A DNA stretch of 64,000 bases, taken from the NCBI GenBank assembly GCA_964199315.1, contig OZ116703.1:25420001-25484000 (forward strand), in the 5' to 3' direction. Source of the DNA: Orbicella franksi. Taxonomy: Eukaryota. The notes under the pieces were generated by a model. That model had not been told where the DNA came from. It saw nothing but the letters and a program-made list of their open reading frames with translations, and did not search any database. This document shows, in pieces, positions 7,997-62,200 of the stretch (position 1 is the stretch's first letter; every line of letters starts with the position of its first letter). A program made the translations under genes and the position numbers.

Positions 7997-9963
7997 ACGC
8001 CCTGAGTTGAAATTACGTTTTCCACCTAGAAAACGGCCCATCATTCTTAATGTTTTTATTGCCACTTGCAGCGCCGATAGTGAATTTAGTGGTGGTACTG
8101 ATAAGTACAAGACTCCTGTGATTTTGTCGAGCTCCGGGAGATGTAGTTGGTTTTGCCCGGCGTCCTTTACCAGCACTTGCCCGATAGATGTGCAGTATTT
8201 TCCATTTGATCGACAGAAATGTATTCTGAAGTTTGGCTCGTGGACATACGAGGTAAATAGCCGCCTTAATACGCCATTTCCGAGGTGTCTTTCGTCTCTG
8301 TGTCAAGACGAGTCTTCGTGCTAAACCATTCATATGGAACTGTGTTCCACCTACAGGTTTAAGGTTTTGCACGAGGACTTGGTTTGAAACAGAGGCACAA
8401 GGTAACTCGGAAATGGCCAATTACAATCAAGATAAAGATAATATATTACTGCAATAATAATATGCATTTCAAAGGTTTATCGCAAGAGTGACCTCTACAC
8501 CTAACAGGATATGCTCTTGCTCCTACAAGTGCCGTGGGTACTGAGGTATTTTAATGACGGGAAGGTGCGGATGAGGCGAAATCGTTAGACCCTGCGCACC
8601 ATCTTTGGAAAATATTTATCCGGCTCTGTCAACACAACGGGATAGCTTTCGTACAACGAAAATAAACTAGATTTCAACTACGCTGAATAAAGAGGTTGAA
8701 ACTAGGCGCAAGGATGTGCAATGGCCCAGAGAGTAAGTCAAAAGTCCTCTTTTTGTCTGCAAAACCTTCATACAAAACTAAAATTCCAGGTTTTTCGTCC
8801 AGTTTTCCTTTTTTGTCGAGCAACGATCACAAACTTAAACTTTAGGCAAACTGAAAAGTGGGGAGTGTTCCAAAACTCTTGAGAACACTGGATTATTATT
8901 TTTGTCTTTCCAAAAATCTTTCAGCCATAAAATAAGTCTGCACAATAAGTTCTTAACAAAATTTTGTCCGTTACAGGTAACAGACCTCGACATGAGAGAA
9001 GAAAACGGCTCCTCCAAATCCCAATACATAGAAAGTGCAGAGTGGAATCTTAATGATGTCAAGAAACAAAGAAACGCCAAAAAGTATACATGCTGCGAAA
9101 ACAAGTTAGCTGATATCAGTATAACTATTGTGATGGATAGAAAACCTCTCTTCTATCTCTTCAACCTTGTTATCCCTTGCCTAATAATCCTGTCTATGAT
9201 CCTCTTGGGTTTCTTCCTACCCCCAGAGTCGGGTGAGAGGATCACGCTCAGTATAACTGTCCTTTTAGCTATGGCTGTGTTCCTTCAGCTGGTTGGAGAG
9301 AGCCTGCCTCGGAACTCCGAGAAGGTTCCTTTACTAGGCAAGTTCTACATCACCATCATGGCGGAAATTTCCATCTCGCTGATGCTTACCTGCTGGGTTC
9401 TGAACATTCACTATCATGGATCCGGAAATTCGGCCAAGGCAGTTCCGCTCTGGGCCCGCATCGTTGTGCTACAATGGCTGGGGTATTTGCTCTGTGTTGG
9501 AAAGCCCGACGGCAGCTCCCCTGAAATACCCAATACTGATCTCAGATACCACCAGGACGACGGCAGGAGGAAAGGAGCACCGTTTGCACTCGACTGGGAA
9601 ACTACCTTTGCGCCAGCCGCTAACTGTCACTGTACGAGGTGTATAAACGCAAGAGGTGCTCTGCACTTCAATGGAGAAAGAAGCCCGGACGAATCCAGAC
9701 TGATAGAGGTGCGATACACCGGAGAATCGTCTCCAATTGATTTTCCCGCCGAGCCACGGCGAGAAAAAGCGAAGGATCCTAAACTTTCCGAGGAAATAAG
9801 CGTGCTTGCAAATAGCATTCGGGAGCGTGAGAAGGTTGAGAAAAATCAAGAAGACTGGAAATACTTCGCCATGGTAATGGACCGGTTCTTCTTCTGGTTT
9901 TACTCCATGACCATCGTTATCTCGACGTTGACCATCTTCCTAAGCCGAACCCATGAAACATGA
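5116..9963 (+). CDS. Nicotinic acetylcholine receptor-like subunit, alpha type (Cys-loop channel), paralog 1; 6 coding exons, 509 aa
   Basis: Exons 5116-5170, 5594-5745, 6259-6303, 7115-7224, 8072-8252, 8977-9963; all GT-AG, phases consistent, 1530 nt. Signal peptide MNMLSFRSLVLAVLLSFK, WIPDIVLYN (loop A), Cys-loop CPIDVQYFPFDRQKC, GSWTY (loop B), vicinal cysteines YTCC, M1-M3 with PESGERITLSITVLLAMAVFLQL, M4 MDRFFFWFYSMTIVISTLTIF. The 45-nt and 110-nt exons match the typical nAChR gene architecture. The start exon is less certain than the rest. Confidence 0.93.
5896..6059. mobile_element. Tc1/mariner-like MITE fragment in nAChR-1 intron 2
   Basis: TA-CAGTCGAA start, repeated taagcggccac motifs and an inverted ggtggccgct; the right end is eroded. 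Confidence 0.45.
7412..7603 (-). mobile_element. tRNA-derived SINE in nAChR-1 intron 4
   Basis: Reverse B-box (ggaatcgaacc, 7569-7579); a second copy lies at 54436-54600 (shared aaactcaacccacatatg.c.ccggg..ggaatcgaacccgggc). Confidence 0.75.
7939..7992. repeat. Compound microsatellite (GTT)5(GAT)13
   Basis: Read directly; ends 79 bp before nAChR-1 exon 5. Confidence 0.95.
8268..8422. mobile_element. MITE with about 54-bp imperfect terminal inverted repeats
   Basis: aatacgccatttccgag... at the left and ...ctcggaaatggccaatt at the right; arms match through gagtc.tcgtgc. Confidence 0.8.
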
Positions 9964-23600: not shown

Positions 23601-26600
23601 AAAAATCAGATCATTACGACAAATGTATGGGTAAGGCAGGTAAGCACAAATTTGATTCATCTTTAAGTCGAATGTTACTGCATATAAGTCACTTTCTTGA
23701 TCAACCAGTTGTATCGACATAAAACGCCCTTTAAAACGGAAGAATTTGAAAACGCCGGGTTTTCGTTATTTTTTGGACGGAAAACATTTTGAAAACGGAG
23801 CTTTCCGAAAACGATATAACCACGATAATCATGTAATTTCCATGACCGAATTTTCCTCAATGACAAATCCAAAATTACCGGTGATTGTTGCGTTTTTAAA
23901 TTTCTTCTCGTGCATGTAGTGTGGACGGAAAACATTGGATGCTTTTTCAGAGTGAAGCCTGAGCCGTTTTCAAATTCCTCCGGCATAGTGTTGGTGAAAT
24001 TCATGGTTGGTGTTGTTTTCAGAAATGGAGGAATCTTCTTTTAACCTGGGATCCAGAAAAGTACGGAGGAATCAAACGTGTTCGTATTAATCCAAGCCTG
24101 ATCTGGATTCCTGATATTGTTCTCTATAACAGGTCAGTTCACGGTGTCACTAAGTATAGTTTTAGTCGTGTTCAATCACAAGCAAGTGATTATCGACTCA
24201 TTCAAGCACTGGACACTGATCGTCACAACGGATGTTAGTGAAGATCATTGCTTGAAGCCCAACCAACCTTGTGTAGCAGGCCTAGACCGGCTAAAGAGGT
24301 TATATTACTTAGTTAACGTTCTTCAAGAGAGACAGGATCCTTCCGAGACGTCTGAGGGACTGACACATATTGCAAAGAAACCGATCATATCTGACTACGA
24401 TTTGGGAATAATTAAATAAGCGCCCCCTTGCGAAAGCGCCTCCCTCGAATAAGCTCCCCGGGGCGCTTATTTCAAATTTTGAAGACGCGGGTGCTAATTC
24501 GAGGATTTACGGTATATTATCCTGACACACTAGCTAAATTCTAACCAAAAATTAAAAATCCTTTGTTGTCTCAGCACTCTTCCAAAAAACAGGGGGAGGG
24601 GAGGGGGCGCTCATTCGAGGGGAGGCGCTTATTTTAAATTTTGGCCGATACGAGGGGCGCTTGTTTGACATGTTTGAGGATTTACGGTACATGTATAGCA
24701 ATTGTGATTATTATCCGTTAAGCGTGCTCTACACGTGTGTCGTAAAATAAAGCTCGAAGAAGGAAAGACAAGCTATGGTACTGATGCGGGTTTTTTCTGA
24801 TCACGAATCCTAGCCTGCTAACACAGAAGGATCGCCGGCTTTTGTTTCGCGGCGTAAAACAAAAGGCTGGGAGCCGGAAATCCGTCTGGATTTCGCAGTC
24901 TAGGCGTTACCAGAAAAGGCAAATTTGTAAACAATCAAAACGGGCTTAAAACATGTTTCGGTTGATGTTTATAAACCTTACCTTACTGGACATGCATGGG
25001 AGATGTATAAATTGTTTACCCTGTTCACTGTTTACCACTCTTGTTGTAAAAAAAATAGCGAACTGAATAAAATTCTTCTTGCAAGTGGACAGTAGATCAT
25101 ATATTTGAATTGCGGAGAAAGATGTAAAGACATGAATAATCATAACCTGCAATTAGGCGTTCCTTTTTAAGGCGGGGGTCTACATGAAGGCCGTCTTTTG
25201 GCTGGGTAGTATGATTTCAACGCAAAGATCTCGTTCACGTTTCAAGCAGTCAAGCATCTCTCTGCTCATCCCACATATCTATGTTTTGGGCTGTTTTGTA
25301 ATTTTTTGGTGATTTTTGGGTATATTTTGAGATATGTAGTTTTTCTCAAAGGATTAACAAAATTTATGGAAACAGGAAATTTTGAAGATTTGGTGTTGTT
25401 TTAAAATTAGAATTTGAAGTTAAAAATTGGTAGACGTACACCAAACAGTTGTCCGCCAACCTGGGGTGCCCTTTCGGGGGCGTTCAACTGTCTGGTGGTG
25501 TTCCAAACCCTTTCTTTCCTTTTAATCCCTCTTTAAACTTCCTAAAATTTCACTTAAATTCAGGTAGATTCCCACCTTAACAGCAGGGCCAAAAAATAAA
25601 ATGACAAACGAGCGCCTGATCGCAGATTAGAATGATCATGACAGTTTAAATGTTTCTTTTCGCTTAATGTAGACATAAAAATCTGAGGGACTCCCGCCGG
25701 GACTACGGGCTTTTTTCTTTTGTTTTGAGAGATCAGAAGGAGACTGTATGATTACGGCCAGTGGATTATAATAGTTAAGGCGCATTCGAACCTCTCTTTA
25801 CGGGCAGCGCTATAATATGGGCAGCCGTGTAGTACGAACAGGTCAATTAGTCCCTGAAAAATCAGAATTCGGTCTCTAACACGGACATATAGACACCTCT
25901 GTGACCGGATACTTAACTTGGCTCTTTTGAAACCCATATAAGAGAGTTAAGCCGGACTGTACTTCAGGAGAAATAGTTCCTACTTAATCAAATGCGGATG
26001 ATATAAGCTCTGGGGGCGTTTCAAGATTACCGCAACAAGTAAGGCTCTTTAAGCAGTATGGTACGAAAAACAACAGAAGACCTGCGGTGCTTGAATAAAC
26101 ATCACAAGTCACGCTCTAAGCGTATTGTAGAACATGTTGTAACGAAGATGTTATGAAACGTTTTCACTTGACGTCATGACAACCATATTGGTGTTTTCAA
26201 ACAATGTAACGGGAGCCATGTTGGTTTATGAAGCCAATGCTTTGGGATCTGAAATCTTTTCTTAACTGTAAAACAATCTTTTGTTCCAATAAATCTACAT
26301 GGCTGCTGACCATGTGAGTCCAAACGCTCTAGATCTTCCCTTCAGAGCTAAAGCTGGATATAAGCTAATGGGCTTATTGGGTGGAGGGGTGTCTGAAAGA
26401 GGTATATTTTAGGAATTTTATGGTATTTAACACAATTTCTCACCTTTACAGTGCTGACAGTGAGTTTAGTGGTGGACTTGAAAAGTACAAGACCAGAGTC
26501 ATCATTGATTACGATGGCATTAATGCCTGGTACAGTCCAGCCTCGTTTCGAAGCACATGTCCAATCGACGTCACACATTTTCCATTCGACAAACAGACAT

Positions 26601-27610
26601 GCACAATGAAATTTGGTTCATGGACGTTTGAAGTTGTTGACCTTGACATTCATGCTGACGTGTCGCCTCTTCACTCAACCCAGTACGTAAAGAGTGCAGA
26701 ATGGGATTTACTGGCAGCTTCTAAGAAGCGCAACGTTCAGCGCTACGCATGTTGCGATTATCCATTCTCTGATGTTACTATCGAGTTCGTGTTCAAACGA
26801 AAGCCTTTGTTTTATATCTTCAACTTGATAGTACCGTGCATGATAATTATGTCCATGGTCTTGTTAGGCTTTTTTCTGCCTCCAGAGTCTGGTGAGCGCA
26901 TAACACTGAGCATAACTGTGCTGCTAGCTATGGCGGTGTTTCTACAACTAGCGGCAGAGAATTTGCCACGCAATTCTGAAAATGTTCCCGTAATGGGAAT
27001 ATTTTACATAACAGTCATGATAGAGGTCGCCAGCTCTCTCGTAGCCACTTGTTACATCTTGCATATTCATCATCGGAATTCTGGGACAGCCTTAGTGCCA
27101 GTTCCTGGATGGGTTAAGGTGTACATGCTCAACAAGCTGGGAAAATGCTTGGGAGTGAAGAAACCTGTTACAGAGGACAAGTACGACTTATCAGCGGAGA
27201 TGGATTTCAAAAAGATTTCTATGATGAAAAGAGAACTGAATAAATGTGACAATGGCAGTAACCACATTAGAACCAAGCTCCTACCCGATAAACTGCAAAT
27301 CGGAACAAGATCAACCTTAAGTTCTCCCGAAGAGTTCTGCATGAGCTCTTCCACTAACTCTGTTGTGAGCACGTTTCAAAAGATGGACACGCCCCAAGGC
27401 AGAAATGATCACAGGAACGGTGACAGCAACAGTGCTAAGACTGCGCAAGGAGTCATGGTAATGGTAGACAGTATAAAACGCCGTCGGCAAATAGAGAAGA
27501 ACCAAGAAGAATGGAGGCATCTTGCTATGGTCTTGGACAGACTATTTTTCTGGATTTTTGTCGTGATTATATTGCTTTCTACCATTATTGTGCTAAGAAG
27601 GGGCGTCTAA
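20646..27610 (+). CDS. Nicotinic acetylcholine receptor-like subunit, alpha type, paralog 2; 5 coding exons, 505 aa
   Basis: Exons 20646-20709 (MALLISSIVFIWITLSGYGTE, signal-peptide-like, phase-1 donor GTTGGT), 22749-22888, 23595-23639, 24023-24132, 26452-27610; 1518 nt, frame intact. Cys-loop CPIDVTHFPFDKQTC, GSWTF, YACC, M2 identical to paralog 1 over 30 aa, M4 LDRLFFWIFVVIILLSTIIVL. Confidence 0.92.
23728..23996. mobile_element. Non-autonomous DNA-transposon fragment ending 27 bp before nAChR-2 exon 4
   Basis: Internal repeats ggacggaaaacatt x2 and tttgaaaacg x2, plus inverted ccgttttcaaatt. Confidence 0.5.
24415..24689. mobile_element. Two stacked MITE ends (Tc1/pogo-like)
   Basis: The terminus gaggatttacggta occurs twice (near 24500 and 24676), with repeated ggcgcttatt / aataagcgcc motifs. 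Confidence 0.55.
24811..24902. mobile_element. Short MITE, TAGCCTGC...GCAG.CTA termini
   Basis: Inverted termini tagcctgc / gcagtcta; same termini as 57015-57144 and 61722-61854. Confidence 0.55.
26151..26329. mobile_element. Eroded MITE
   Basis: Imperfect TIR (aacgttttcact / gtgagtccaaacgctct) and an internal repeat cca(t/g)(a/g)ttggt. Confidence 0.4.
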
Positions 27611-47200: not shown

Positions 47201-50200
47201 TCTACGGTAAAGATTAAAGCCATAAGCTTATAGGGCCGTGCACTAAAATAAAAGAAAAAATAATAAATACTGTAACCTACTATTATTACAACCCAAAAAC
47301 ATGTTCTCAAAAATCATTCAATTAAACCTTTTATTACCCGTGGACCCACGATAATGCACCTCGCACCCTTCACTTTACCCTCGCGGTTGCCAGCTCGCAC
47401 AGCTGCTAAAAGTAGTAGTCGGTCTCCATAAATATTCTTGGCTGCCTAGTAGCTTCCATGGAAATATTACAAGGGAACTTTAATACTAGTGTCTTCTGAG
47501 AAAGTTGACATTGTTGTGTTGCTTCGTGGTCACCAGATGACACAAGACAGCCTGGAGGATGTCAAGGGTGAGAAAGCGCGCCTTGAAGAGGACTTGCGAA
47601 GGTAACTGCCTGAGTCACGTCATAATTAAACAAAGTACAAAATAAAAACAAGTAGTTCTTGCATTTTTCTTTTCCCTTTTTGTATTTATTTATATCTGTT
47701 CCGAAACAATTTTCAGACGCAGAGCCGGAAAATCGAAAAAGACGAACTGGAAACATTTCGGCTGTCGTTGCGACATACCCATGACACATAACGTGAACTT
47801 CCGCTGATAAGCACCCTTCCCCCCGCTCATAAGCCCCCTAGGTTATAGGCCCATCTAGCTGTAAACCAAAAAATATTTCCAGTTATACTATACATTATTA
47901 TTAGTGTAAAATCTATGTGTGGAGTATGTAAAGGCTGTGGGAACGTTCCCTTTGTTTTGTCTACAATGACGGTCTTTTACCTGCAGGAAAGAACAAGAAC
48001 TCAACGAAAGTAATGGCAATAACGAAAACCTCCTGGCGCAAATCGAGTCATTAAAGAAGAAAATAAGAGAGTTGGAGGTATGGAAAAGTACAAAAACAAA
48101 ACCAAAAAAAGGAACCGTTAAATAGTTTTCTCTAAGGTTTTACTTTGGTTCGGTTTCGGTCAACGTGCTTGATCACTGATGAACTTGCTTCATCACTGAT
48201 GAACGGGTTTTCATTTTTAGCACTCTTGATGAAATGTTTGTGAGAATGCTTCAAATAAAGCATTTAGTTGATTATCAACTTCAAGTTTGTAGAAGTAAAT
48301 ACTGGTAACGAAAGCCACACAGTAACCTGGGAACGAACTTCACCTGTTGTCTACAGCTGAGAAACCCGGATTTTCTCGCCACGCGGGCTAATAGATTCCT
48401 CTCGTAAACTGACTGAAGATCAACCCACTAGAAACATTTCAATCGTGTGTGACTTCTATTTTACTCGTACTCCAGTCTGCCGCTATCCATCATATTGCGA
48501 CCGCAGTCTAGTCTTTTGTAAAATATGTTTGCCTTGCAAGGGTTTTCCTTTGTTTCGTAAGTTGAATTTTAATGAACCATTGACTAAAGATTAAACTTTT
48601 TAATAGCTGTGTACAGGTTATTACTGCATTCCTGCATAACATTGTCACGAGGCGGGCTGAACGGCTCCAGGTCAGCTTATGTTGCTGGATTTCGGATCAA
48701 TAATGTAGTATTTCAAACGTGTGCGAGTATATCTGCGAAATCAGAGCTTTTGAAAGCATGTGGGCAGCGGAGGCACACAACTACAGTTTCTATGTGCATC
48801 CATCAGACAAGATATCCGCTGTAAGTGAAGGCTTCTTGTCGCGTGAAGAAAATGCCGACGCTGTTTGCTCGTGGACGGTGCGAATTTTGACATTCCAGGC
48901 AATTTACTACGTGCCGCAAATTGTGCTCTCTCAAACCTGATTGTTATTTTAATCCATCGCAAAATATTGGCGAGGATATTTGTTCGTTAGATAGTGCAGA
49001 CAGATCTTGTTGCCAGTCGGATTTCACCAGCTGGTATGAACAAGATCTAGCTGCCGTTCCTAGTTTGTTTCGATTTCAAGTTGGGCCGGCATTCGTTTAA
49101 CCACTGTACACTGCGAAGTAACAGCGCGCGTGATGCAGAGCACAGGAGTTTTCGCTCCAATGAGTTTGTACTTTCTTTGTTCTTCAGGCCCGCATCGAAG
49201 AGTTGGAAGAAGAATTGGAACAAGAGAAAAATGCGCGATCCAAGGTATGGTGAACACTTGCACTTACTGATTACATAAGCTCTACTAGGAAGGGGAGTTA
49301 TATAACCATACAGTCAACTTCTTGTACTGACCTTTAAGTCGATGGACTTGAAATCGAGAACTTAATTAGCACATCGGTGAACTGTTTGCGTCTTTCTTTT
49401 GATAACAGTACAATGTACATCTAATCTGCATCTCGTGGAATTCTTTCACTATATTTTTCTGCATTACTGAGCAGTCTTCATCGCACTGTTTCGGCCGAGT
49501 CGACAAAGCTAATGAAACACGGGAACAAGCTTGTGATTTGTTCTCGGAAAGAAGTCACGTAGAGAGGCTTACAGTTTTAATTTGTTTTGAGATCAGCGTC
49601 ACGACGAGCGAACAATGGCAAATAAGTTGCTAAACCTTCCGTTATCTCACTGTCGAAACTTGTTTAAAAAAGCTATCGTAACTTTTTTATTCTAAGTTAA
49701 AGAAATATGCAGGTTTATACACAGTAAGGTATATTGGACATTATTCATTCCTCCACGGCTGGAGGTTGAATTGAATTTCCGTCTTGTCATCCAACAGGCG
49801 GAACGCGCGCGAATGGAACTCGAGAGGGAACTGGACGATTTAAACGAAAGACTTGAGGAACAAGGTGGTGCCACCCAGGCACAGGTATGTGTTGGAAAGT
49901 AAATATTGTATTAAAGAAAAAACGAAATTGAAGCGACCGGAAACGGAAAAACACAAGTACAGGTAGTCGGAAATGAAAGTTTGTTCTTCAACGCTTTGCA
50001 AAAAAAAAATGTGTGTTTGTTTGTTTTTGAATTCTTTTTTTGGTTTAAACTGTGCCACTCATGGAAGTGTATGAAGAGATAAATAAGTATTTTTGCTTTT
50101 TTTTTTTCTGCCGTAGATCGAGCTTAACAAAAAGCGCGAGAGTGACATCACCAGACTCAGACGAGAACTCGAGGAACAGGCCTCGCAACATGAACAGTCC

Positions 50201-53200
50201 GTCAACAGCATGCGGACCAAACAAAACCAGGCCTTGCAAGAACTGCAGGACGAATTAGATTCCTTGAAGAAATCCAAATCCAAGTATGTACCTGAAACAA
50301 CTTGATAGTTTGACTATTATGAAAATGAGAAGGGAATATTGAGATATTTAACAAATTACGAGAATTTTTTTTTTTAAATGGACAATCCGTGTCAAACGCT
50401 CGTTTGACTCGTCACGCTTGTCACGCATCGCGTGACAAGCCCAAAGAAAGTCACCGAAGAAAGTCGAGCCAAAAATTACCAGACAGTAATAAACGTAAAA
50501 TAAAGCGACAGGTGAGTGTCCCTCACAGCGCGTGATATAAAAATATTTCCCGTGACTTACCATATATTAATTTTTTTCGTAGGATCGAAAAGGAAAAGAA
50601 TGCTTTGCAAGCTGAAGGGGACGATCTTTCTGTCAGCTTGGAAACACTGCAAAAACAGAAGGTATTGCACAGTACTGCTGTTGTGTGTTTTTAGTGTTGA
50701 CTTTAAGGTTTTCCACTTGTTGTTGTTGATGTTTCATCTAATGGTTTGCTTGCTGTTATTTTCAAAGGCTCAGTCGGAAAAACAAAACAGAGCACTGGAG
50801 GAGCAGCTCAATGATCATAAGTATCAGGTGAGGAAAGAAACTCGGCTAACGGCTTGAGAATTGAGATAACGTCACTCTTTTACTTATACACTTACGTGGA
50901 TTATACAGCTGTTGAATCAGAAGCACATTTTCCCAAATAGTTTCTCAATATTGTTTGTACACCTGGCCCGAAAAGAAACCGAACTCAAGTGTTTTACTGA
51001 AAAACAAACCTCGACAAGAAATCCCGGTCACATCTCTTGCTGTGGCCGACCAGAGTTCCGAGTTCAGAGGACATAGGTCATCTTGGAGTGGAGTACATCC
51101 TGAATATTAAATAGTATGGACTAAGTTGTTATGCAGTTCATCAAATCTTTGAATAGTCCACTACCGCAAAAAAAAAAAAGAAAGAAAAGGAAAAAAAAAG
51201 GGAAAGAAAAAGCAAAGTAAGATTGATCACACACACAAAAAATTCAGGCTTGAATGGGATTCGAACCCATGACCTCTGCCATACTGGTGCAGTGCTCTAC
51301 CAACTGAACTAACAAACCAACTGGGAGCTGGTCATGTTGTAAGGATTGTGAATAAAGATCGCTGAATCGGATACTGAAATGTTCTGCGTAATGTTTTGTT
51401 TCACAATTGCCACTCTCCGTGTTAATTTTCTTTTAGGTGGAGGAATTGAAGAAGGCTATCGCCGAATTGGAGATCGCTCGCAGTCGTTTGACCCAAGAGG
51501 GCGGAGATCTTGGAAAGCAGGTCGAAGAATATGAATCTAAAATGACCATACTTTTGAAAGGAAAGAAAGCCCTGGAGCAGAAAGTGGAGGAACTGAAGGG
51601 ACAAAACGAGGAGGAAATCAGAGTAAGTCTTCTTTTATTCAGCCATTCAATTTCCAGGAGTGATAAGCACTTATTTCTCCTTACAATCTTAGATTTGTTT
51701 TAAAAAAAGCAGGTTGTAAGAACGAAGAAGTCGTTATCTTGGGAATAAAGGTCCGGTGATACGGGCAACATTTTTCTTCAACTTGTCTCGCAACATTGTT
51801 GCATTGCAAGTTGAAACACTCTGTTGCGCGTATTACCACTTTTGTGACCAACTTGTCTCGCAGCAAAATACAGTGTTGGAGGTTGAGGTAATATGTTGCG
51901 CAAAGTAGGCTCGAGTTCTACTTTCTGCAACAAATTTTAGTTTTGCTGCTCGTATTACCACTGAAGCTTCAACTTGTCTCGCAACAATTTGAATTCGACT
52001 CTTGTGATTGGCAAAGCGCGGCAACGCGGCAACGCGGTAACGCGGCCAAAAAAACATGGTGGACGGTAAAGACGAGCCTGAATTCAAAGTAGGCCAGTAA
52101 CTCTCGGAAAGTAATAATTTCCCCTGTGCAAAGACCTTGAGGGCTATCATAGTCTTTGGGGCACCTCGTTTGTCCGTTCAAAACAAGCGGCACAACAGGC
52201 AAAAGGCTTGGAAGAACTGTTGCAGAAATACAACTTTTCGCCTAGCTATCTGTTACGACAACAAAACTTTATTTTGTTCTGAAATGACACTGAGCCTCAT
52301 ACTGAGAGAACTTCGCTGGCACGGAAAATTAAGAAGAAATGACGGCCAGAAGTGAAAGTGGAAGTTCGTCGAAACGATAAATTATATAAAAGGCGCCATC
52401 TTTATTTAGACACGATTGACCAATGAAACGTAAAGAATTCGCTGACTTGCAACACTGTATTTTGCTGCGAGACAAGTCCATCACAAACGTGGTAATACGC
52501 GCAACGGAGGGTTTCAACTTCCAATGCAACAATGTTGCGAGACAAGTTGAAGAAAAATGTTGCCCGTATTACCGGACCTTAAGTTGCAATCAGAGCTCGG
52601 CATCAAAACGGTCAGACTTGTCAAATTTAAACTAGATGTTAACTATTGAATGTTTGTGGTTCAGCTTAAAGTGGACGCTCAGAATAAGTTGAAGAACGCC
52701 GAAGCCGACTTGGAGAGCATGCAGGAGACGATCGAGGAGCTAGAAGACGGCAAGGCCGACTTGCAGAAACAGCTCATGAAGGCTAATACCGAGATCGCCC
52801 AGCTTAAGGCTAAGTTCGAACAGGAGGTGTCTGGTCGAGTGGAGGAACTTGAAGACGCTAAGTGAGTCATTCTTACTCGTATAAATCCTTTTAAACCGCC
52901 AACGAGTTTAACAACTCAAAATGATCCCAAATTTCAGTTTGGGAGACGTGGAGATTTAAACACGGCTGCATGAAAGTACTGCTCGATAGCTTTCTTTTGA
53001 ATGTTTAAACCCCTGAGTTTCATCCACAGACTTCAGATAACCACCTTGTTTAGCATAATAAACATTGCAACATGAAAGTACTGCTCAATAACTTTCATTT
53101 GAAAGGTCACACACTACGGTTTCATCCATAGACTTTAAAGTTGGAACCACCTTGGACAGCATAGTAAACAGTACCACATGAAAGTATGGCTCAACAGCTT

Positions 53201-56200
53201 TCAATTGAATGGTCACACACTAGGGTTTCAGCCACAGACTTTAAAGTAATGGTCACAGATTAGTGTCTTATCCTAAGACTCAAAACTTCAAGAGACTCAC
53301 AGTTGGCTCTACCTCTCTCTTTTCGAAACTCTGGAGACGTAGGGTGGGGAACCAAACTGCGGTCACGTGGTATCAATCTTGACGTTCTTACTTACTCTTT
53401 CGTTAGACGCAAGCTGACACAGAAACTACAAGAGACCGAAGAAGCTCTTTCTAGCGCCAGTCAAAAGGCCAGCAATGCTGAGAAGGCCAAGAACAGACTT
53501 AACTCCGAGTTGGAAGATGCCCTCATCGACTTGGAGAAGGTTAGCTTGTTTTCCTGCTGCAACACTTTTTTTCCTATTTTCAATATCACTTTTTATTAAC
53601 TCACTCGCTCAATCCTCTTCGTTCCTGATAAAACGTCGGTCATCCATTGGTGCCCGCCACCTGACCCTATTTTGAGCAGTGCGTTTCGCTTCCTACCACG
53701 TTAGAAATCTCTCCTCCAACTCTGCTATTCTTGTGCGCCTCCAGATGCGCTGGATTCTGCCTCTCTCGGGCTTCTCATATGGGTTCCACTCTTTGGCACT
53801 CATTGTTAAACATACTATTATATTTTTAAGCGTTAGAGTAAACCATTTACAGGGTTGTCACAGATCAGAAAATGATCAGGGAAAAAACACTCTACAAGGT
53901 CAGGGCTAAGTCAGAGAATTGTAAATTTTGAGTTTGAAGAAAAATCATTGAGGGTTGGAAGAAACATTTGCGGTCACTGTGAGCTCGACGATGTTCTTCC
54001 TTAATGAAGAAAAAAAGATTTGTTGAAATCTTATAAGTCTTAATGAATGAGTGGAAAGGAGGGCTGTAAAGGGGAGGCCAGACACCGCTAGTACTTACTT
54101 AGTGTATCTGACGTTTTGCATTATTTGGTCAGGGAAATTCTGTTTTTATGAGGGAAAAGTCGGGGAATTTTGAAAAGTGATGTCTGTGGAAACCATGGTT
54201 TATAAAGTGCTGTGTATTTATCCTGACAGGCTACGACAAACGCTGCCAATCTGGAAAAGAAACAGAAGAAGTTCGACCAGCAGATAAACGAGTGGAAGTT
54301 ACGGTGCGATGAATTACAAGCTGAAGTGGACAATGCACAGAAAGAAGCGCGTAACTACTCCACTGAGGTTAGTCGCAGATCTGCTTTGGTTTAGAAAAGA
54401 AATAAATCGCAATATTTAGAGAGGAAGCTAAATCGGCCTTAGCTGGTTTTCATTCGAGTCCTCTCTCCCTGTCGAATTGGAATTTGGAGACGTGCCCGGA
54501 GAAAAATCCTCGGAGCAAAGCCAAGAAGTAACAACAAACTCAACCCACATATGGCGCCGGGCAGGAATCGAACCCGGGCTACATAGGTGGTAGACTGCTC
54601 CCAACATTAACTCCCCAGAACTCTCAAGACGTCTTTTTTGTGAAGTTTATTCGCTGCAAGGCCGTGCATTGTCAATACAATTCTTACGGAGTGTTTTATT
54701 TATTCCACTTCAGATGTTCAAGCTGAAAGGATTGAATGATGAAATGAACGAACAAATGGAACTCTTGAGAAGAGAAAAGAAGAGCTTGGAAGGTTTGTGT
54801 TTCTCTTGTTTTTCTTTAGTTTGTTAACAATTTCACTTCGGAAACTAGCGTCGTTTAAAAACAAACATCTCAATTTTGCAGAGTATCGCAAGATTAAGTT
54901 CGCACAATTACCACCCAATAACTTTAATTCAATATTGTTCCTCACTAGGGTTTAATTCATGTACAGAGTTCAAGATAAAACCACATTGAAAACATTTACC
55001 CGTAACAAGTATCCCTCAAAAGTAGTCGCGTTGTAATGGTCACACCCTAAACTTTCATCCACGGACGGATTGAAAGCTAGAAATTATTGACTTAAGTCCT
55101 TGCACTGTTAGAAACTACGTAAAAGATGTCGTAACATTGTAATTGCACAGATCAAATACAATGGGGCGAACAAAGGGAATCTCATTCCAGCTTATTGGTA
55201 CCACTCTCATTCATACTATAGGACAATCTTTGTTTACATTGGTTAGCTCATTAGTATAAGCGATACAGTTTCCGATTGGGCTACAAAAACAGTAGTTCTG
55301 AATATTAAAATGGCACGGCACGATTAACTGTCCCAAGGAATTTCCTTCCGATGTATTGAATACTTTTTGTGCGACGCGGGTTAAAAAATTAAAAATTTTG
55401 CAAAGAATTTATGAGCTCATTAGCGCTTTTGCCACCCAGAATTTTGCAGTTTTTGAAGCTTATTTCTCCTCGAATATTACACCCAAAGAGCCAAAGAATT
55501 CATCAGTTACTAAGTTTCACTAGCTCTTAAAATGTCTGTAGTCAATTCGTGTATAGCGTGGTGCCTTATCTGCGAAAAGTCGTATGTTAATGAGGAAAAA
55601 TGTAAAATTTACGTCACCTAAGATTCGCCTATTAATCAAAAGCTGATAAGTTCCTCTAATTTACGTTCCACAGCCGAGGTTGCCGATTTGGCAGAGCAGC
55701 TTGGAGAGGGAGGCAAGTCTGTGGTGGAAATTGAGAAGGCAAAGAAGAGACTCGAATTTGAGAAAGAAGAACTACAGAGCGCCTTAGAGGTAAAGTACAA
55801 AGCGGAAGCAAAAGCAAACCGCTACTCTTACTTGCTAAAGCAAATTGCCATTGCCGAAACAAGAGTTTAAAAAGAAAATGGAAACAAATGTCGCAGTTTC
55901 CTGTCCTTGAAGTGCATCGCAGTTGTGAAGAAGAGATTGCGTGAATTCTTAGAATCAAAAGTAACAGCGCGAGATAATTTAAGATTTGCAGGAATTTTGT
56001 TTTAGAAAGAAAGTTTAATAAACGAACACCAGGCATCGAACCCGGAAAAACTCGGTGGAACTAACCGCAAGCAAACATAAGTGAAGTTAACCGCAAGAAA
56101 ACCGGAGACGTGTAATCCACATAAAGTGAGCTAACCTGGTCTCTCGTTAATTGTTGAATTGGTATGTAAGGATTTCCTAATCGAACACGTCTAAGGCACG

Positions 56201-59200
56201 GTTTGTGCTGCGTTATAGGAAATAGAAGCTGCTCTAGAAGCCGAAGAATCCAAGGTAACGCGGGCTCAGCTTGAGCTCACCCAGTACAAGCAGGAAGCGG
56301 AGAAGAGAATTGCGGACAAAGACGAGGAGTTAGAGAGTATGAGGAAAAACCATGCCCGTCAGCTGGAGAGTCTGCAAGCATCCTTGGAAACCGAGATTAA
56401 AGCTAAGAGCGACTTGGTAAGTATTTGTACATCCTTGATATCCCTTACCACTTCAGAAACTTGAACTTCGGATGTTTGTTTTCTTTTGTTTTTTTGGGCT
56501 CTTAAGAATATGAAGCAAAGGAAATGTAACGAATTAGGAGCATCGTGTTGCTGTCTACCTAGGCCGTTTGGCGAACCAACCAACAGTTTAGAATTTTCCT
56601 TTGGGTTGTCTTAATCTTTTAATCTACAGTTTTTTCCTTACTTCATGAACTAATGTTAAAATTTCTTCTTTGCAGTTGCGCGCAAAGAAGAACCTAGATG
56701 CGGCCAACAATGAACTTGAGATCAATCTAGACAACGCCCTAAAGGTGAGATGTGCTACCAGTGTTTTCTTTGCTTTTCTGGACGTGATGTCGTTTTGCGA
56801 TTGGCTTGTCATTTGCTTTGGTAGAATGAGACTGAGTTTTAGTTTGCTGTTGGTTTTGATTTTTAGGCTAACGCAGAATTCCAGAAGAATTTGAAGAAGT
56901 TACAACAGCAAGTGAAGGTTTGTATTTCAGACACCCTCGCTATGTCTTAACTTCTAGCAGAAACAACGTGCTTTTCATTGTCATCAAGTGTTTTGTAAGT
57001 TTCTTCAGCTCCATTAGCCTGCGAACAGGCTCGCGAAACCCGCCCCGATCGCCTCGTTCTCCGTTTTCTTCAGTTTCGCATTCGTCCGCTCGCTTCGCTC
57101 ACCGAATTTTTTTCCGTTTTCCCCTGGAGCCTGTTCGCAGACTGGGTTCCATTTGATACCATCCAAAGAACAATTGTGAATGAGGCTCGGTCAAGACTGC
57201 ATCACAGTTAAGACTGATTCAGTGATTCGCAATTCTACTGAGCTCCATGAGGCTGATTGAGTTCTTGCCATTGTTTATGACTAATGAAGTACAGCAATAG
57301 CTCCAATGTAGATTGACATATTGTGACAAGTATATACGTGGAATACATGACTTGATCTACGACTTCTTTACGATAACAACTAGAAACAAAAGTTTATTAA
57401 GATATGTGGCAACACGAAACAAGAATGGCAGCGATTGGCAGAGATTTAGGGGTATTACGAACGTGAAAAAATTAGGTTTAAACACGGGGACTCCCACGTA
57501 AAGCATCCCCGACCTTTTCACACGGGAGTTCCCCTCTCCCCCGTAGGTTTAGAGTCTAAGTTGCTCGCGTGTAGGAATGGGGTTTACATGACACTATACC
57601 GTCACAATAGTTTCACAATGGTAGTAATTGGCTTGTCAATTTTCTTGTTTTGTGTAGGATCTGCAAATGATGGTTGAAGAGGAACAACGTGGTCGGGATG
57701 ATGCCCGTGAAGCCGCCGCCAAAGCTGAACGCCGTGTCGGTGAGATCAACTCGGAGCTGGATGAACTTCGAAGTCAGCTGGAACAGGTACGTGTCTGGCT
57801 GTCATAGGCAAACACGTGATTTGGTGTGAGATTTTGCGGGATTGAAACCTCTTTAGGGTTCTGTGAAGAATGGCGAAGGAAAAAAAAAACAGCACTCGCC
57901 GTTGTTCACGATGGTCCCAGATTACAGCGGCTATATTTTTGTGGAGTCAAAATAGGCCATATTGGTATTCTCGGTATTGGACTGGAACTAGCTTGAAATG
58001 GAGGCTCATGCAGGGGGAATATCATTAAAAAGCGACAAAAGTCATTTGCATTTGAAAAAACTCCACAGATTAGCCTCAGTTGCAAGCTAGTTCCAGTCCA
58101 TTATTGAGAATACGAATATGGCCTATTGCACGAGAACAGTGGAATGGATATTCATAAACTTCCCAACAGTGTTCGATATTCTTCGAGTTATACATACCTC
58201 GAATTATCAGAGTAGCTCTATTGAGCTAATATTTTTACCGGCCACTAAGGCCAGTAACGGTGGTGACTATTAGGACGATTTGATGTGACCACTTGCTTGT
58301 CCTTCGCCAGGCTGAGCGACTTCGCAAGATAGCCGAGCAGGAGAAACAAGAGGCAGTGGACAACATGGCCCAAGCCACAACCCAGGTCAACACCCTCACC
58401 CAAGCCAAGCGTAAACTGGAACAGACAATCAGCAGCTTGCAAGAGGAGGCTGAAGATCTGGAGAATGAAGCTAAGAATGCTGATGACAGGGCCAAGAAAG
58501 CTGCTATAGAGGTACGTTTTAGCTTATGTTGTTTGTTGTCACAAATAAGAGCTTTGGCAGGGTTACCCCGAACGGAAGTAGATAATTACGTTTATCTTTG
58601 ATAACTGCACAACCACAAAGGTACAGAAAGTACCTAAAATGGCTCAGTGACCCCGCTTGCGCTCGCCAGCTAAGTTTCGAGAGAGCTGCTGACCCATAAA
58701 GTGGGGAACCCCCACCCCCCCCTGGAACCCTCTTGAAATGAACACGGAACAGAAACGCCACGCTTCCACACAGAGTGTGGGCGCTACGAACATGCGTGCT
58801 TACACGGCCAAGACCTCATTACTACAAAGAATTACGTTACTGAACACTTTATCATTGTTGTTAAAATTCCATTTAACGTTGTAAAACAGGACGATATTGA
58901 AAACATAGTAAATGTGGCGACTTTGTGTTTACAGTTGGCCCGCGTGCAACAAGAACTGGCACAGACTCAAGACCGCCTGGCTAATTCTGAAAGAGGCCGC
59001 ATGTCGGCCGAGCGCCAAGTCAAGGATCTGGAGGTCAAACTTGAGGAACTTGAGGCCCAGGGCGGTAAAGCGCTCAAGAATCAAATCAAGAAATTAGAAC
59101 AGAGGGTAAGTCAGTATTATTTCAACTGTTCTAAAGTTACATCAGTTCTCGATACCCTCTTTTATTAGGAACAGGGCAGGAAAAAACCCAGGTCCGATTG

Positions 59201-62200
59201 CCCGCGGCAAGGAAATTTTGCTCTTGGGCAAATTAAAAGTTTGGTGTTGGGTGGACATCTGAAATTAGCCTCTGTAGTCTTGTTAGTGACAATTTGCAAT
59301 CAATTTCAAAACTTAAGAATGCAAGATGAGCAAAACAGTGAGTTGAAAACATGGATTACTGATTACAGACAGTATCTAGTGAATGATGTAGTTGGTAAGG
59401 CGCAAACATTGCGCCCTTATTAGGCAAGCAATACATGTATTTTAGTGGGGGCAAAAAAACCCTGAAATTTACTGGCCCACTGGGCAACTGGATTTCAAAA
59501 CTTTCTTTCCCCACCACGAGGAATCGTGTCGTGTTAACGTAAGGTTATTCTTTATATTTTGCTTTTGATCACAGATTCGAGAATTGGAAGTTGACCTGGA
59601 CAGTGAGACTAGACGCGCTGCAGAGCAGCAGAAGCTCAGCAAGAAGCAGGAGAGGCGTCTGAAAGATGTGGTTCAACAGCAGGAAGAAGACCAGAAGAAC
59701 ATGCAGCACTTCAAGGACCAGGTCGACCGCCTTAACAAGAAAATCAAGTCCACCAAAACCAACCAGGAAGAAGCGGTATGTGCCCTTTTCTCTCCTCTTT
59801 CCTTCCCCCTCTTCTCTTCTCTTTCTCTTCTGACTTCTCATATCTCATTCTCTCCTCTACCCTGACCCTTTATCTCTACCGTGAAATTCTCCATTTGCCT
59901 TTCTTCATAACGCTTGCCGTTAACTCTCACTTAAAACGATCAATCTTACCAAAAAAAAACCCGGCTAGAAACGGGGAGATACGTTCCCTGTATAACCACT
60001 AAGCTTTAGATAAGAAAACTAGCGTCTAGTCATCGACATCAACTCTCCAAATCTAACTATTGCATTACATGTCCCCTCTTTTTAGGAGAACCTTGCTGCT
60101 CAGTACCTCGCCAAAGTGCGTAAGCTGCAGAAGGACCTGGAGGATGCCGAGGACCGTGCAGAGACCGCTGAGAGTGCGCTGAACAAGGCCCGTAGCCGCG
60201 CCCGGGCGAGCGCCGGCGGTGGAGGAGTCGGGAGGCAGACGTCAAGAGAGGTCTCTAGGCCTTTATCTCCTTTACACCACAGATATCACTCTTATAATTC
60301 GCTATTGTCCCCAACATCCAGCTTATATTCGGACAATGACTCTAGATAATCGAGTTATAATTAATTTGAACCCTAGTTTGCTTATGGAGCTTGCTTTTTA
60401 TCACTTTTCCTGTGGAATGTAACCTCCTTTCTCGGTATTCATCTAACTGCTCTTGTCTTGTCATGTCACCAAGTACTCCCGTGGGTACTCCTGTCCGTGC
60501 CCCCGTCGGTACTCCCGTCGTTAACGAGGCCGTGTCAAAACCACGCGAACCCCAATTTTGAGTTTTAGTTTTCTCGAAATAAAGCTTTTTTATGATAGAA
60601 CGTTGTAATGGACGCTTATTAATCCATGAGAACCAGAACCTACGAAGGTTGCAAAAGGTGTCTCCCGCAACTTGTTCTCGAAAGAAAACAGAGATTTTAT
60701 TAAGCCAACTGTAAGTTAACTCTGCTGACAGATTATTGGCTTTCTTTACCTAAATAAATTAACAGACAAGGAGTCGAAAAGTGCTATTGCTCTGAATTGT
60801 AAATATTGATTATATAACATATTGCCTCGTAATTGTTTGTTTTTACCGCTAAAGAATGAAATTTGCATTAGAAAAAAAGACACGACATTTTGATAACAAG
60901 CCTGCACACGCATGGCCAAACAGACGTCTATGCTATTGTTAACGGCATTGCTCGGTTGTGTGGCTTGTCTAGTTTATGCGACAAGTTGAATCCCGTTTCA
61001 ATAACAAACATTCAAGTTAGATAAACATGACCTTGAGCGAAATCTCCCGGAAAGTCGACTTCTGTTTTCAGTGGTAATTGGCATGGTTCCTTTGACAACC
61101 CTTTCGTTCCGCCTAATTGATAAACACCCTCCTACGAAAGTACAGCGATTTTAATGAAAGTTGATGGTTAGCTGACAAATTCGTTGTTTATTTAAATGGT
61201 GACATGACGAGCCAATCTTGGCGACTGTCCTTAATGTTTCTCTTGATTCTCTCTTTCTAATTCTTTTGCAAATATCATTTATGCTTGTGTTTCTATGTCC
61301 ATGCTTAGCTGATCACGAGTTATTTATGTTGATATTCTTACTCGTATAGTTATTTTTTTCCTTAGCTCTGTTCGTTTATTTAAGTAATTTAAGGGGTGCC
61401 ACACTTGTTTTATGGTTTGTTGTTCCTAACCAACTATGTAACATGCATACGTCTAATGACTTGAGTGACAGCTACTGTAAAGCTTAGTTAATTGGGTCAA
61501 CGCCTCTGAAAACTACCGTAATATTCACGTGCGGCAGGTCAAGGAACTCAACCATTCTTGTCATTCCATCTTGAGCACCCAACACTAATATAATACAGGC
61601 GTAATATTTTGTTGTTTTTTTTGGTAGAATTTCCTCATCGTTGCATTTTAGCGTGCCGTTATTCCTTCGTCCCTTGTGCTTCTGTAGTAACTAATTTATA
61701 TAAGGTTTAACGACTCTTAAATAGCCTACGTTGCAAGAGATCCCGCGAATCCCGTACGAAGAGCTTTTCGCATTCAGGCCGCGCGCACATTGGAGCGAGA
61801 GCAAAAAAATCGTGGATTGTTTTGTTCTCGCTTAAACGCTTGCTGCGCAGGCTAACTTGTAGAGGGATTCCGCATACATGTACCATTTAGTAGGGTATCG
61901 GTGGGTGTTGTTAGGCTGCACTGGGCGAGACAGTGAGTAGCTGCGATAGTTGCAGCGCCAAGTAGTGAAGTATTCCCTATTAACTGTTTCTCTCGGCATG
62001 TTTATGCCACAGAGACTCCGCAGTCCTACTCCTAGCGCTGGCGAGGATTGAAGATTGCACTTAGGTAACTGATCCGGTCAGAGATTCAGCCATCCGAACC
62101 TTGCGGTGTCGGTTCTAAGATCACCTCATTCCTTCGTACTTGTGTCAAAAGTTACTATCATCTCACCGCTCGCCCAGTGAAAGTCATATACTCCACTAAG

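Follow-up and report, generated by a model that had tools for sequence, protein, structure and literature searches.

A single-copy conserved block in intron 28 of a coral muscle myosin heavy-chain gene, a candidate cis-regulatory module at the position of the catchin-specific exon

Myosin rods that lack the head occur in molluscs, where catchin/myorod is abundant in catch muscle, and in flies. For cnidarians, no report of a headless myosin rod was found in the literature searched. Catchin consists of 156 unique N-terminal residues followed by 830 C-terminal residues that it shares with the myosin heavy chain (PMC12040844), which confirms the initial annotation of the DNA analyzed here, where catchin was described as a unique N-terminus joined to roughly 830 heavy-chain residues. 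The unique part of catchin runs directly into residues matching the 11-residue start of exon 29 of the coral myosin gene (Kollmar and Hatje, 2014, Fig. S3, PMC3912159). As this boundary coincides with the start of exon 29, intron 28 of the coral gene is the intron of the catchin-specific exon, and the catchin junction, judged from the sequence given in Fig. S3, therefore falls into the intron in which the initial annotation had placed it. Thus, molluscan catchin/myorod (Yamada et al., 2000; Kollmar and Hatje, 2014) and the putative coral rod would share the same joining point within the heavy chain, and 860 residues follow this point in the coral. However, while expression was shown for catchin, the coral rod is a prediction from sequence, and its 21 N-terminal amino acids exhibit neither similarity to the catchin N-terminus nor a coding-type constraint. 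When the 21-aa peptide was compared by eye with the published alignment, none of the N-terminal motifs of catchin (...RGTSPAV.E.IA.HP...SARSKK...) could be recognized.

The myosin rod protein of Drosophila (Standiford et al., 1997) is likewise a headless product of the Mhc gene that originates from an internal start, with an N-terminus that shows little conservation across species. There, however, the unique part is a 5′ extension of an exon, whereas the coral candidate would be a distinct exon located within the S2 region. In addition, the fly protein starts about 260 residues before the coral site, which is at the equivalent of residue 1113 of MYH7. A further comparable case is the rod-only gene Mhc8 of Lottia gigantea, which begins at the catchin position and thus at the equivalent of coral exon 29 (PMC3912159); Mhc8 is an independent duplicated gene, though, and the coral candidate would be an internal start. 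The proposal that the coral locus encodes a homologous rod protein predating bilaterians found no support, with a peptide unlike the catchin N-terminus, a conserved block that is absent in the distant comparison sequence L025 and an evolution resembling that of non-coding DNA. An isoform of this kind, if real, would at best be young and convergent.

Muscle modules composed of M-CAT sites and E-boxes have been characterized in vertebrates and flies, and we know of no such module documented in corals. The block in coral intron 28 is similar to these M-CAT (TEAD)/E-box muscle enhancers in that a conserved cluster of CATTCC and CAGCTG sites is located in a non-coding part of a muscle myosin gene. 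It differs from them in that the coral sites are known as consensus matches alone.

The window, that is the whole 64,000-nt stretch of Orbicella franksi DNA to which all positions refer, contains the gene of a muscle-type myosin II heavy chain, which occupies the plus strand between about 32 kb and 60.35 kb. Exon 30 aligns with residues 1132-1160 of MYH7, and the best PDB alignments were obtained with striated-muscle myosins; placed from the alignment of exon 30, the start of exon 29 corresponds approximately to MYH7 residue 1113. The curated exon model comprises exons 29-47 (Table 1), and the labels "intron 28" and "residue 1099" were adopted from the initial annotation. A search of the coral genome yielded a single further myosin-II-type locus at a distance of about 1 Mb, whereas a rod-only gene was not among the results. 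This second gene (G000:C6:26424861-26434257, minus strand) has larger exons and far stronger matches to the Myosin_tail_1 profile, with up to 155 bits per exon, and is probably a non-muscle or smooth-type paralogue. Upstream of the myosin gene, the window contains two long open frames on the plus strand (8902-9963 and 26381-27610) with four transmembrane stretches, whose predicted products look like Cys-loop (nicotinic-receptor-like) channel subunits.

Table 1. Features in and around intron 28 of the coral myosin heavy-chain gene (window positions).
Feature	Position	Strand	Remarks
Exon 28	47987-48077	+	...LKKKIRELE, then gtatgg; canonical upstream partner of exon 29
Intron 28	48078-49187	+	1110 nt; 5′ third neutral-like, 3′ 740 nt constrained
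Upstream conserved island, possible enhancer/core promoter	48468-48660		0.93-0.95 identity to relatives
TAATGA, homeodomain consensus match	48570-48575		Consensus scan only
CATTCCT, M-CAT-type	48627-48633		Invariant; consensus scan only
ORF-containing island, 10 nt before the ATG through GTAAGT	48748-48826	+	0.95-0.97 identity; 75-77 of 79 bases identical
Candidate ORF/putative alternative first exon	48758-48820	+	aagcATG, 21 codons, A at -3
GTAAGT donor-like hexamer	48821-48826	+	Phase 0 with exon 29
Downstream conserved island	48847-48947		0.90-0.92 identity; contains CATTCCAGG at 48891-48899
E-box CAGCTG	49028-49033		Invariant in 5 sequences; consensus scan
Exon 29	49188-49244	+	57 nt, 19 residues, after ttcttcag, phase 0; putative first shared exon
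Exons 29-47	49188-60349	+	860 rod and tailpiece residues; curated GT-AG model, continuous frame

Most of what the initial annotation had described at the level of the letters could be reproduced. The 21 codons that lead from the ATG at 48758 to GCT|GTAAGT, in phase 0 with exon 29, are present, an in-frame TAA is located upstream of the ATG at 48701, the intron given as 1.1 kb has the length listed in Table 1, and the second GTAAGT at 48557-48562 exists as well. For the rod part following the junction about 855 residues had been expected, which is roughly the right size, although the exact count from the curated exons is 860. The hypothetical isoform would thereby comprise 881 aa with a calculated mass of 101 kDa. 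The description of intron 28 as CpG-rich proved to be weak, with an observed/expected CpG ratio of 1.02 compared to 0.80 for the whole window; bins of 200 nt near intron 28 reach ratios of 1.5-1.8. As the value of 1.02 is not exceptional, a CpG island as sign of a promoter in intron 28 was rejected. Codon 13 of the ORF reads GTG in the window (position 48796), while the same-species contigs L010 and L011 and the five relatives contain GTA or another codon ending in A. The base at 48796 is derived or polymorphic in the assembled individual.

The combination of ORF and donor is by itself no better than chance. Using a simple donor matrix, GCT|GTAAGT obtained a score of 2.2, with the 19 real donors of the rod region ranging from 1.7 to 6.4 (median 3.9). 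The score is low because GCT, the exon side of the site, is non-consensus. When intron 28 was shuffled, 38% of the shuffles contained at least one ATG-initiated ORF of at least five codons that ended at an equal or better phase-0 donor, and two to three comparable candidates were present within 9.7 kb of rod introns. Taken together, these two results place the motif alone at chance level, and an ORF with such a donor would turn up by chance in roughly a third of comparable introns. What is new here is the conservation of the block in intron 28.

For the analysis of conservation, genomic contigs were used that derive from five related corals and from two anthozoans at a greater distance; they were found by an exact-word scan of JGI metagenomes and by look-ups of ORFs called on public contigs. 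At 4-fold sites, the raw differences to the window amount to 12% for L013, 16% for L043, about 30% for L038 and L015/16, 44% for L024 and 56% for L025. The identity at 4-fold sites, which is 0.68-0.71 for the further relatives, served as neutral level. Conservation of the intron-28 sequence, on which the initial annotation had made its proposal depend, was indeed found and lies well above this level. Excluding gaps, the identity of intron 28 is 0.88-0.89 and the highest among the 5-16 introns available in each of the five comparisons. Calculated per alignment column, it is 0.77-0.82, which is the top value in four comparisons and the third in L043. The length of the intron is also steady (1031-1149 nt in the relatives), whereas gains or losses of several hundred bases occur in other introns. 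No other long intron of the rod region is conserved as well as introns 28 and 29, and exon 29, with its 57 nt and symmetric phases (0-0), sits between them. A short symmetric exon flanked by highly conserved introns is the typical appearance of regulated exons. Intron 28 is single copy in the 497-Mb genome that was searched, and an origin of the block from a repeat or transposon was rejected on this basis.

The constraint is unevenly distributed along the intron. Its 5′ part (48088-48440) is neutral-like, with identities of 0.62-0.75, and the constrained part, with identities of 0.80-0.97, extends over the 3′ ~740 bp from about 48450 to 49187. There, conserved islands (Table 1) are parted by short variable spacers, and the tail of the intron 3′ of 48947 exhibits identities of 0.80-0.90. 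For the island around the ORF, the number of identical bases was taken over four sequences from three related species; compared to the 4-fold identity, its conservation corresponds to P = 6e-8 and P = 4e-10 in the two more distant of these relatives. In all five related corals the ATG, the open frame (without any indel) and the GTAAGT at 48821 are intact, and TTTTGAAAG|C immediately 5′ of the ATG at 48758 is conserved. The hexamer at 48557 reads GCAAGT in all relatives and is therefore not conserved. Immediately 3′ of the conserved GTAAGT a variable spacer begins, which includes a 3-nt indel. In the distant coral L024, whose contig starts 7 nt before the donor, GCTGTAAGT, TGTCGCGTG and ACATTCCAGGCAATTT are kept in the same order. 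Both the GTAAGT donor and the CATTCCAGG element are thus retained in a species with 44% different 4-fold sites, and CATTCCAGGCAATT persists at this distance, too; the contigs L040-L042 of the distant coral end outside of intron 28. No similarity to the conserved block could be detected in L025, in which intron 28 is 411 nt long. This absence indicates that the element is lineage-restricted and not ancient.

Between species, the 63 nt of the ORF appear to change like regulatory DNA and unlike coding sequence. Across the five relatives there are nine variable sites and 11 inferred changes, which are distributed 3:4:4 over codon positions 1, 2 and 3 and result in about seven replacements (H7R; V13L/I; D17A/N; I19K/T) compared to three silent changes. 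In the true exons of the gene, changes are found mainly at position 3, where identity is 0.80-0.82, compared to ~0.99 at the other two positions. Observing four or fewer of 11 changes at position 3 is improbable if at least 70% are expected there, although so few events provide limited power. Likewise, a signal of purifying selection on the ORF as a protein was not obtained from these 11 events, a number that gives low power. The identity in the 200 nt upstream and the 100 nt downstream of the ORF is as high as inside of it. The drop in conservation after the donor spans only about 10 nt and would also fit with spaced factor-binding sites.

With a probability of about 0.5, we consider the conserved block to be a lineage-restricted cis-regulatory module, either an enhancer or possibly an internal promoter. 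The ORF would in this case lie within a single-copy, lineage-restricted and conserved non-coding module that takes up the last two-thirds of intron 28, from about 48450 to 49187. This module would represent cis-regulatory DNA of the myosin gene and control where or how strongly the gene is transcribed. It would act as a cluster of factor sites, for which the candidates are two M-CAT/TEAD-type CATTCC sites, one E-box and one TAAT site; CATTCCAGG is among the M-CAT/TEAD matches of the consensus scan. The whole island would be held constant as nucleotides with no peptide being made, and the ATG, the frame and the GTAAGT would persist because the island is constrained at the nucleotide level. Being single copy and conserved well above the neutral level, the block has the sequence properties expected of a conserved cis-regulatory module. 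From the constraint, its limits, the copy number and the motif matches, all of which were directly observed, we infer the regulatory function and the type of the binding factors. One aspect would count against such a module: the GTAAGT at 48821 is kept even in the distant coral, the one at 48557 is not kept, and a spacer follows straight after the former, which resembles a donor in use. The presence of a regulatory module would also be compatible with that of an internal promoter.

It is conceivable, albeit unlikely, that intron 28 contains an internal promoter together with a first exon of 21 codons, the end of which (48820) would be spliced to exon 29, so that an 881-aa headless rod would be incorporated into thick filaments in convergence with catchin/myorod. 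This would be in agreement with the presence of an ATG with an A at -3, an open frame and a GTAAGT in phase 0, with the intactness of all three in the five relatives and of the donor also in L024, and with the lack of conservation of the rival GTAAGT at 48557. In addition, the conserved island of 190 nt upstream could serve as promoter, the intron corresponds to that of the catchin-specific exon, and the 860 aa from exon 29 onward compare with 830 in catchin. However, the substitution pattern is not codon-like, the peptide comprises merely 21 aa and is unlike the 156-residue domain of catchin, the donor departs from the consensus on its exon side, and the block is missing from L025 and hence not ancient. 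Moreover, no spliced contig could be found among the public contigs that were retrieved for the site; all of them, including 12 Logan and ENA contigs of the window's species, are unspliced and follow the genomic order. Although 14 RNA-labelled runs from 12 studies contain the region 48560-48900 almost fully, such runs also contain 48-66% of a 5.9-kb stretch of which only ~17% is exon. As these runs are rich in intronic or genomic sequence, the presence of 48560-48900 in them is no evidence for an exon. Protein searches, the blanks of which are weak, also did not retrieve any protein that joins such an N-terminus to the rod. With the 73-aa read-through ORF the only matches were unspliced genomic ORFs of relatives, with exon 31 the matches were almost all short genomic ORF fragments, and a mixed-alignment search aimed at rod-only coral proteins was dominated by crustacean myosins. 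A search with the 40-aa junction peptide yielded no candidate, but this blank is unreliable since the search also missed the 63-aa sequences P0152 and P0153, which share at least eight 5-residue words with the query. Should the exon actually be used, one and the same position of the gene would have given rise to rod-only myosins more than once, corals could tune the composition of their thick filaments, and a cnidarian would have independently invented a lineage-restricted, rod-only thick-filament myosin.

Somewhat more doubtful still is the idea that the conservation serves RNA processing, be it the control of exon 29 splicing or a rarely included cassette, either non-coding or disrupting the frame, with the GTAAGT as its donor. 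As an example of the latter, an acceptor AG at 48755-48756 would give rise to a 64-nt exon and lead to a stop in exon 30. A role in RNA processing would fit with the rank of introns 28 and 29 among the long introns, the 0-0 phase of exon 29, the conserved TTTTGAAAG|C before the ATG and the large share of intronic sequence from this gene in RNA libraries. The candidate acceptor is, however, nearly devoid of a pyrimidine tract and thereby unlike the real acceptors of the gene, and a loss of the 19 residues encoded by exon 29 would disrupt the heptad register. That the block has no function at all, with a chance ORF situated beside a chance GTAAGT in an ordinary intron, appears highly improbable. 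The shuffle rate of 38% and the comparable candidates in other introns would be in line with mere chance, yet the island exceeds the 4-fold-site identity by far (P down to 4e-10) and parts of the block survive in the distant coral.

Several other explanations were rejected. The Rfam search returned a chance-level match only (E = 0.11), and in RNAalifold the covariation term was unfavourable (+2.2) with many broken pairs. A structured RNA was thus rejected for want of an Rfam match or a covariation-supported fold. In public data, minus-strand gene calls of 146-196 aa overlap the intron block in L014-L023, L024 and L039. The call that was translated (L014) holds an internal stop and corresponds to exon 29 in antisense; it is an artefact that arose when a prokaryote-style gene finder was applied to coral DNA. 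The minus-strand calls of 175-178 aa on relatives were accordingly dismissed, and a gene on the opposite strand was rejected. As intron 28 contains no rod-like frame, a mutually exclusive exon 29 copy within it was rejected, and a recursive splice site at 48821 was rejected as the GT is not preceded by an AG.

If the exon is unused, the locus presents a sharply delimited conserved intronic module of ~740 bp in a coral muscle gene, which contains TEAD-type and E-box-type motifs. The putative regulatory module would then offer a concrete candidate for an enhancer or internal promoter active in cnidarian muscle, and few such elements have, to our knowledge, been defined.

Another intron of the gene, the one after exon 34 (51623-52664), harbors an element of ~850 nt (51739-52589) with terminal inverted repeats of 145 nt that are 90% complementary. 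This element has 119 matches in the genome, of which about 40 are complete or nearly complete, with identities of 82-89%. In the relatives, the same intron has a length of only 103-161 nt, and the element looks like a MITE-like DNA transposon that was inserted in this lineage.
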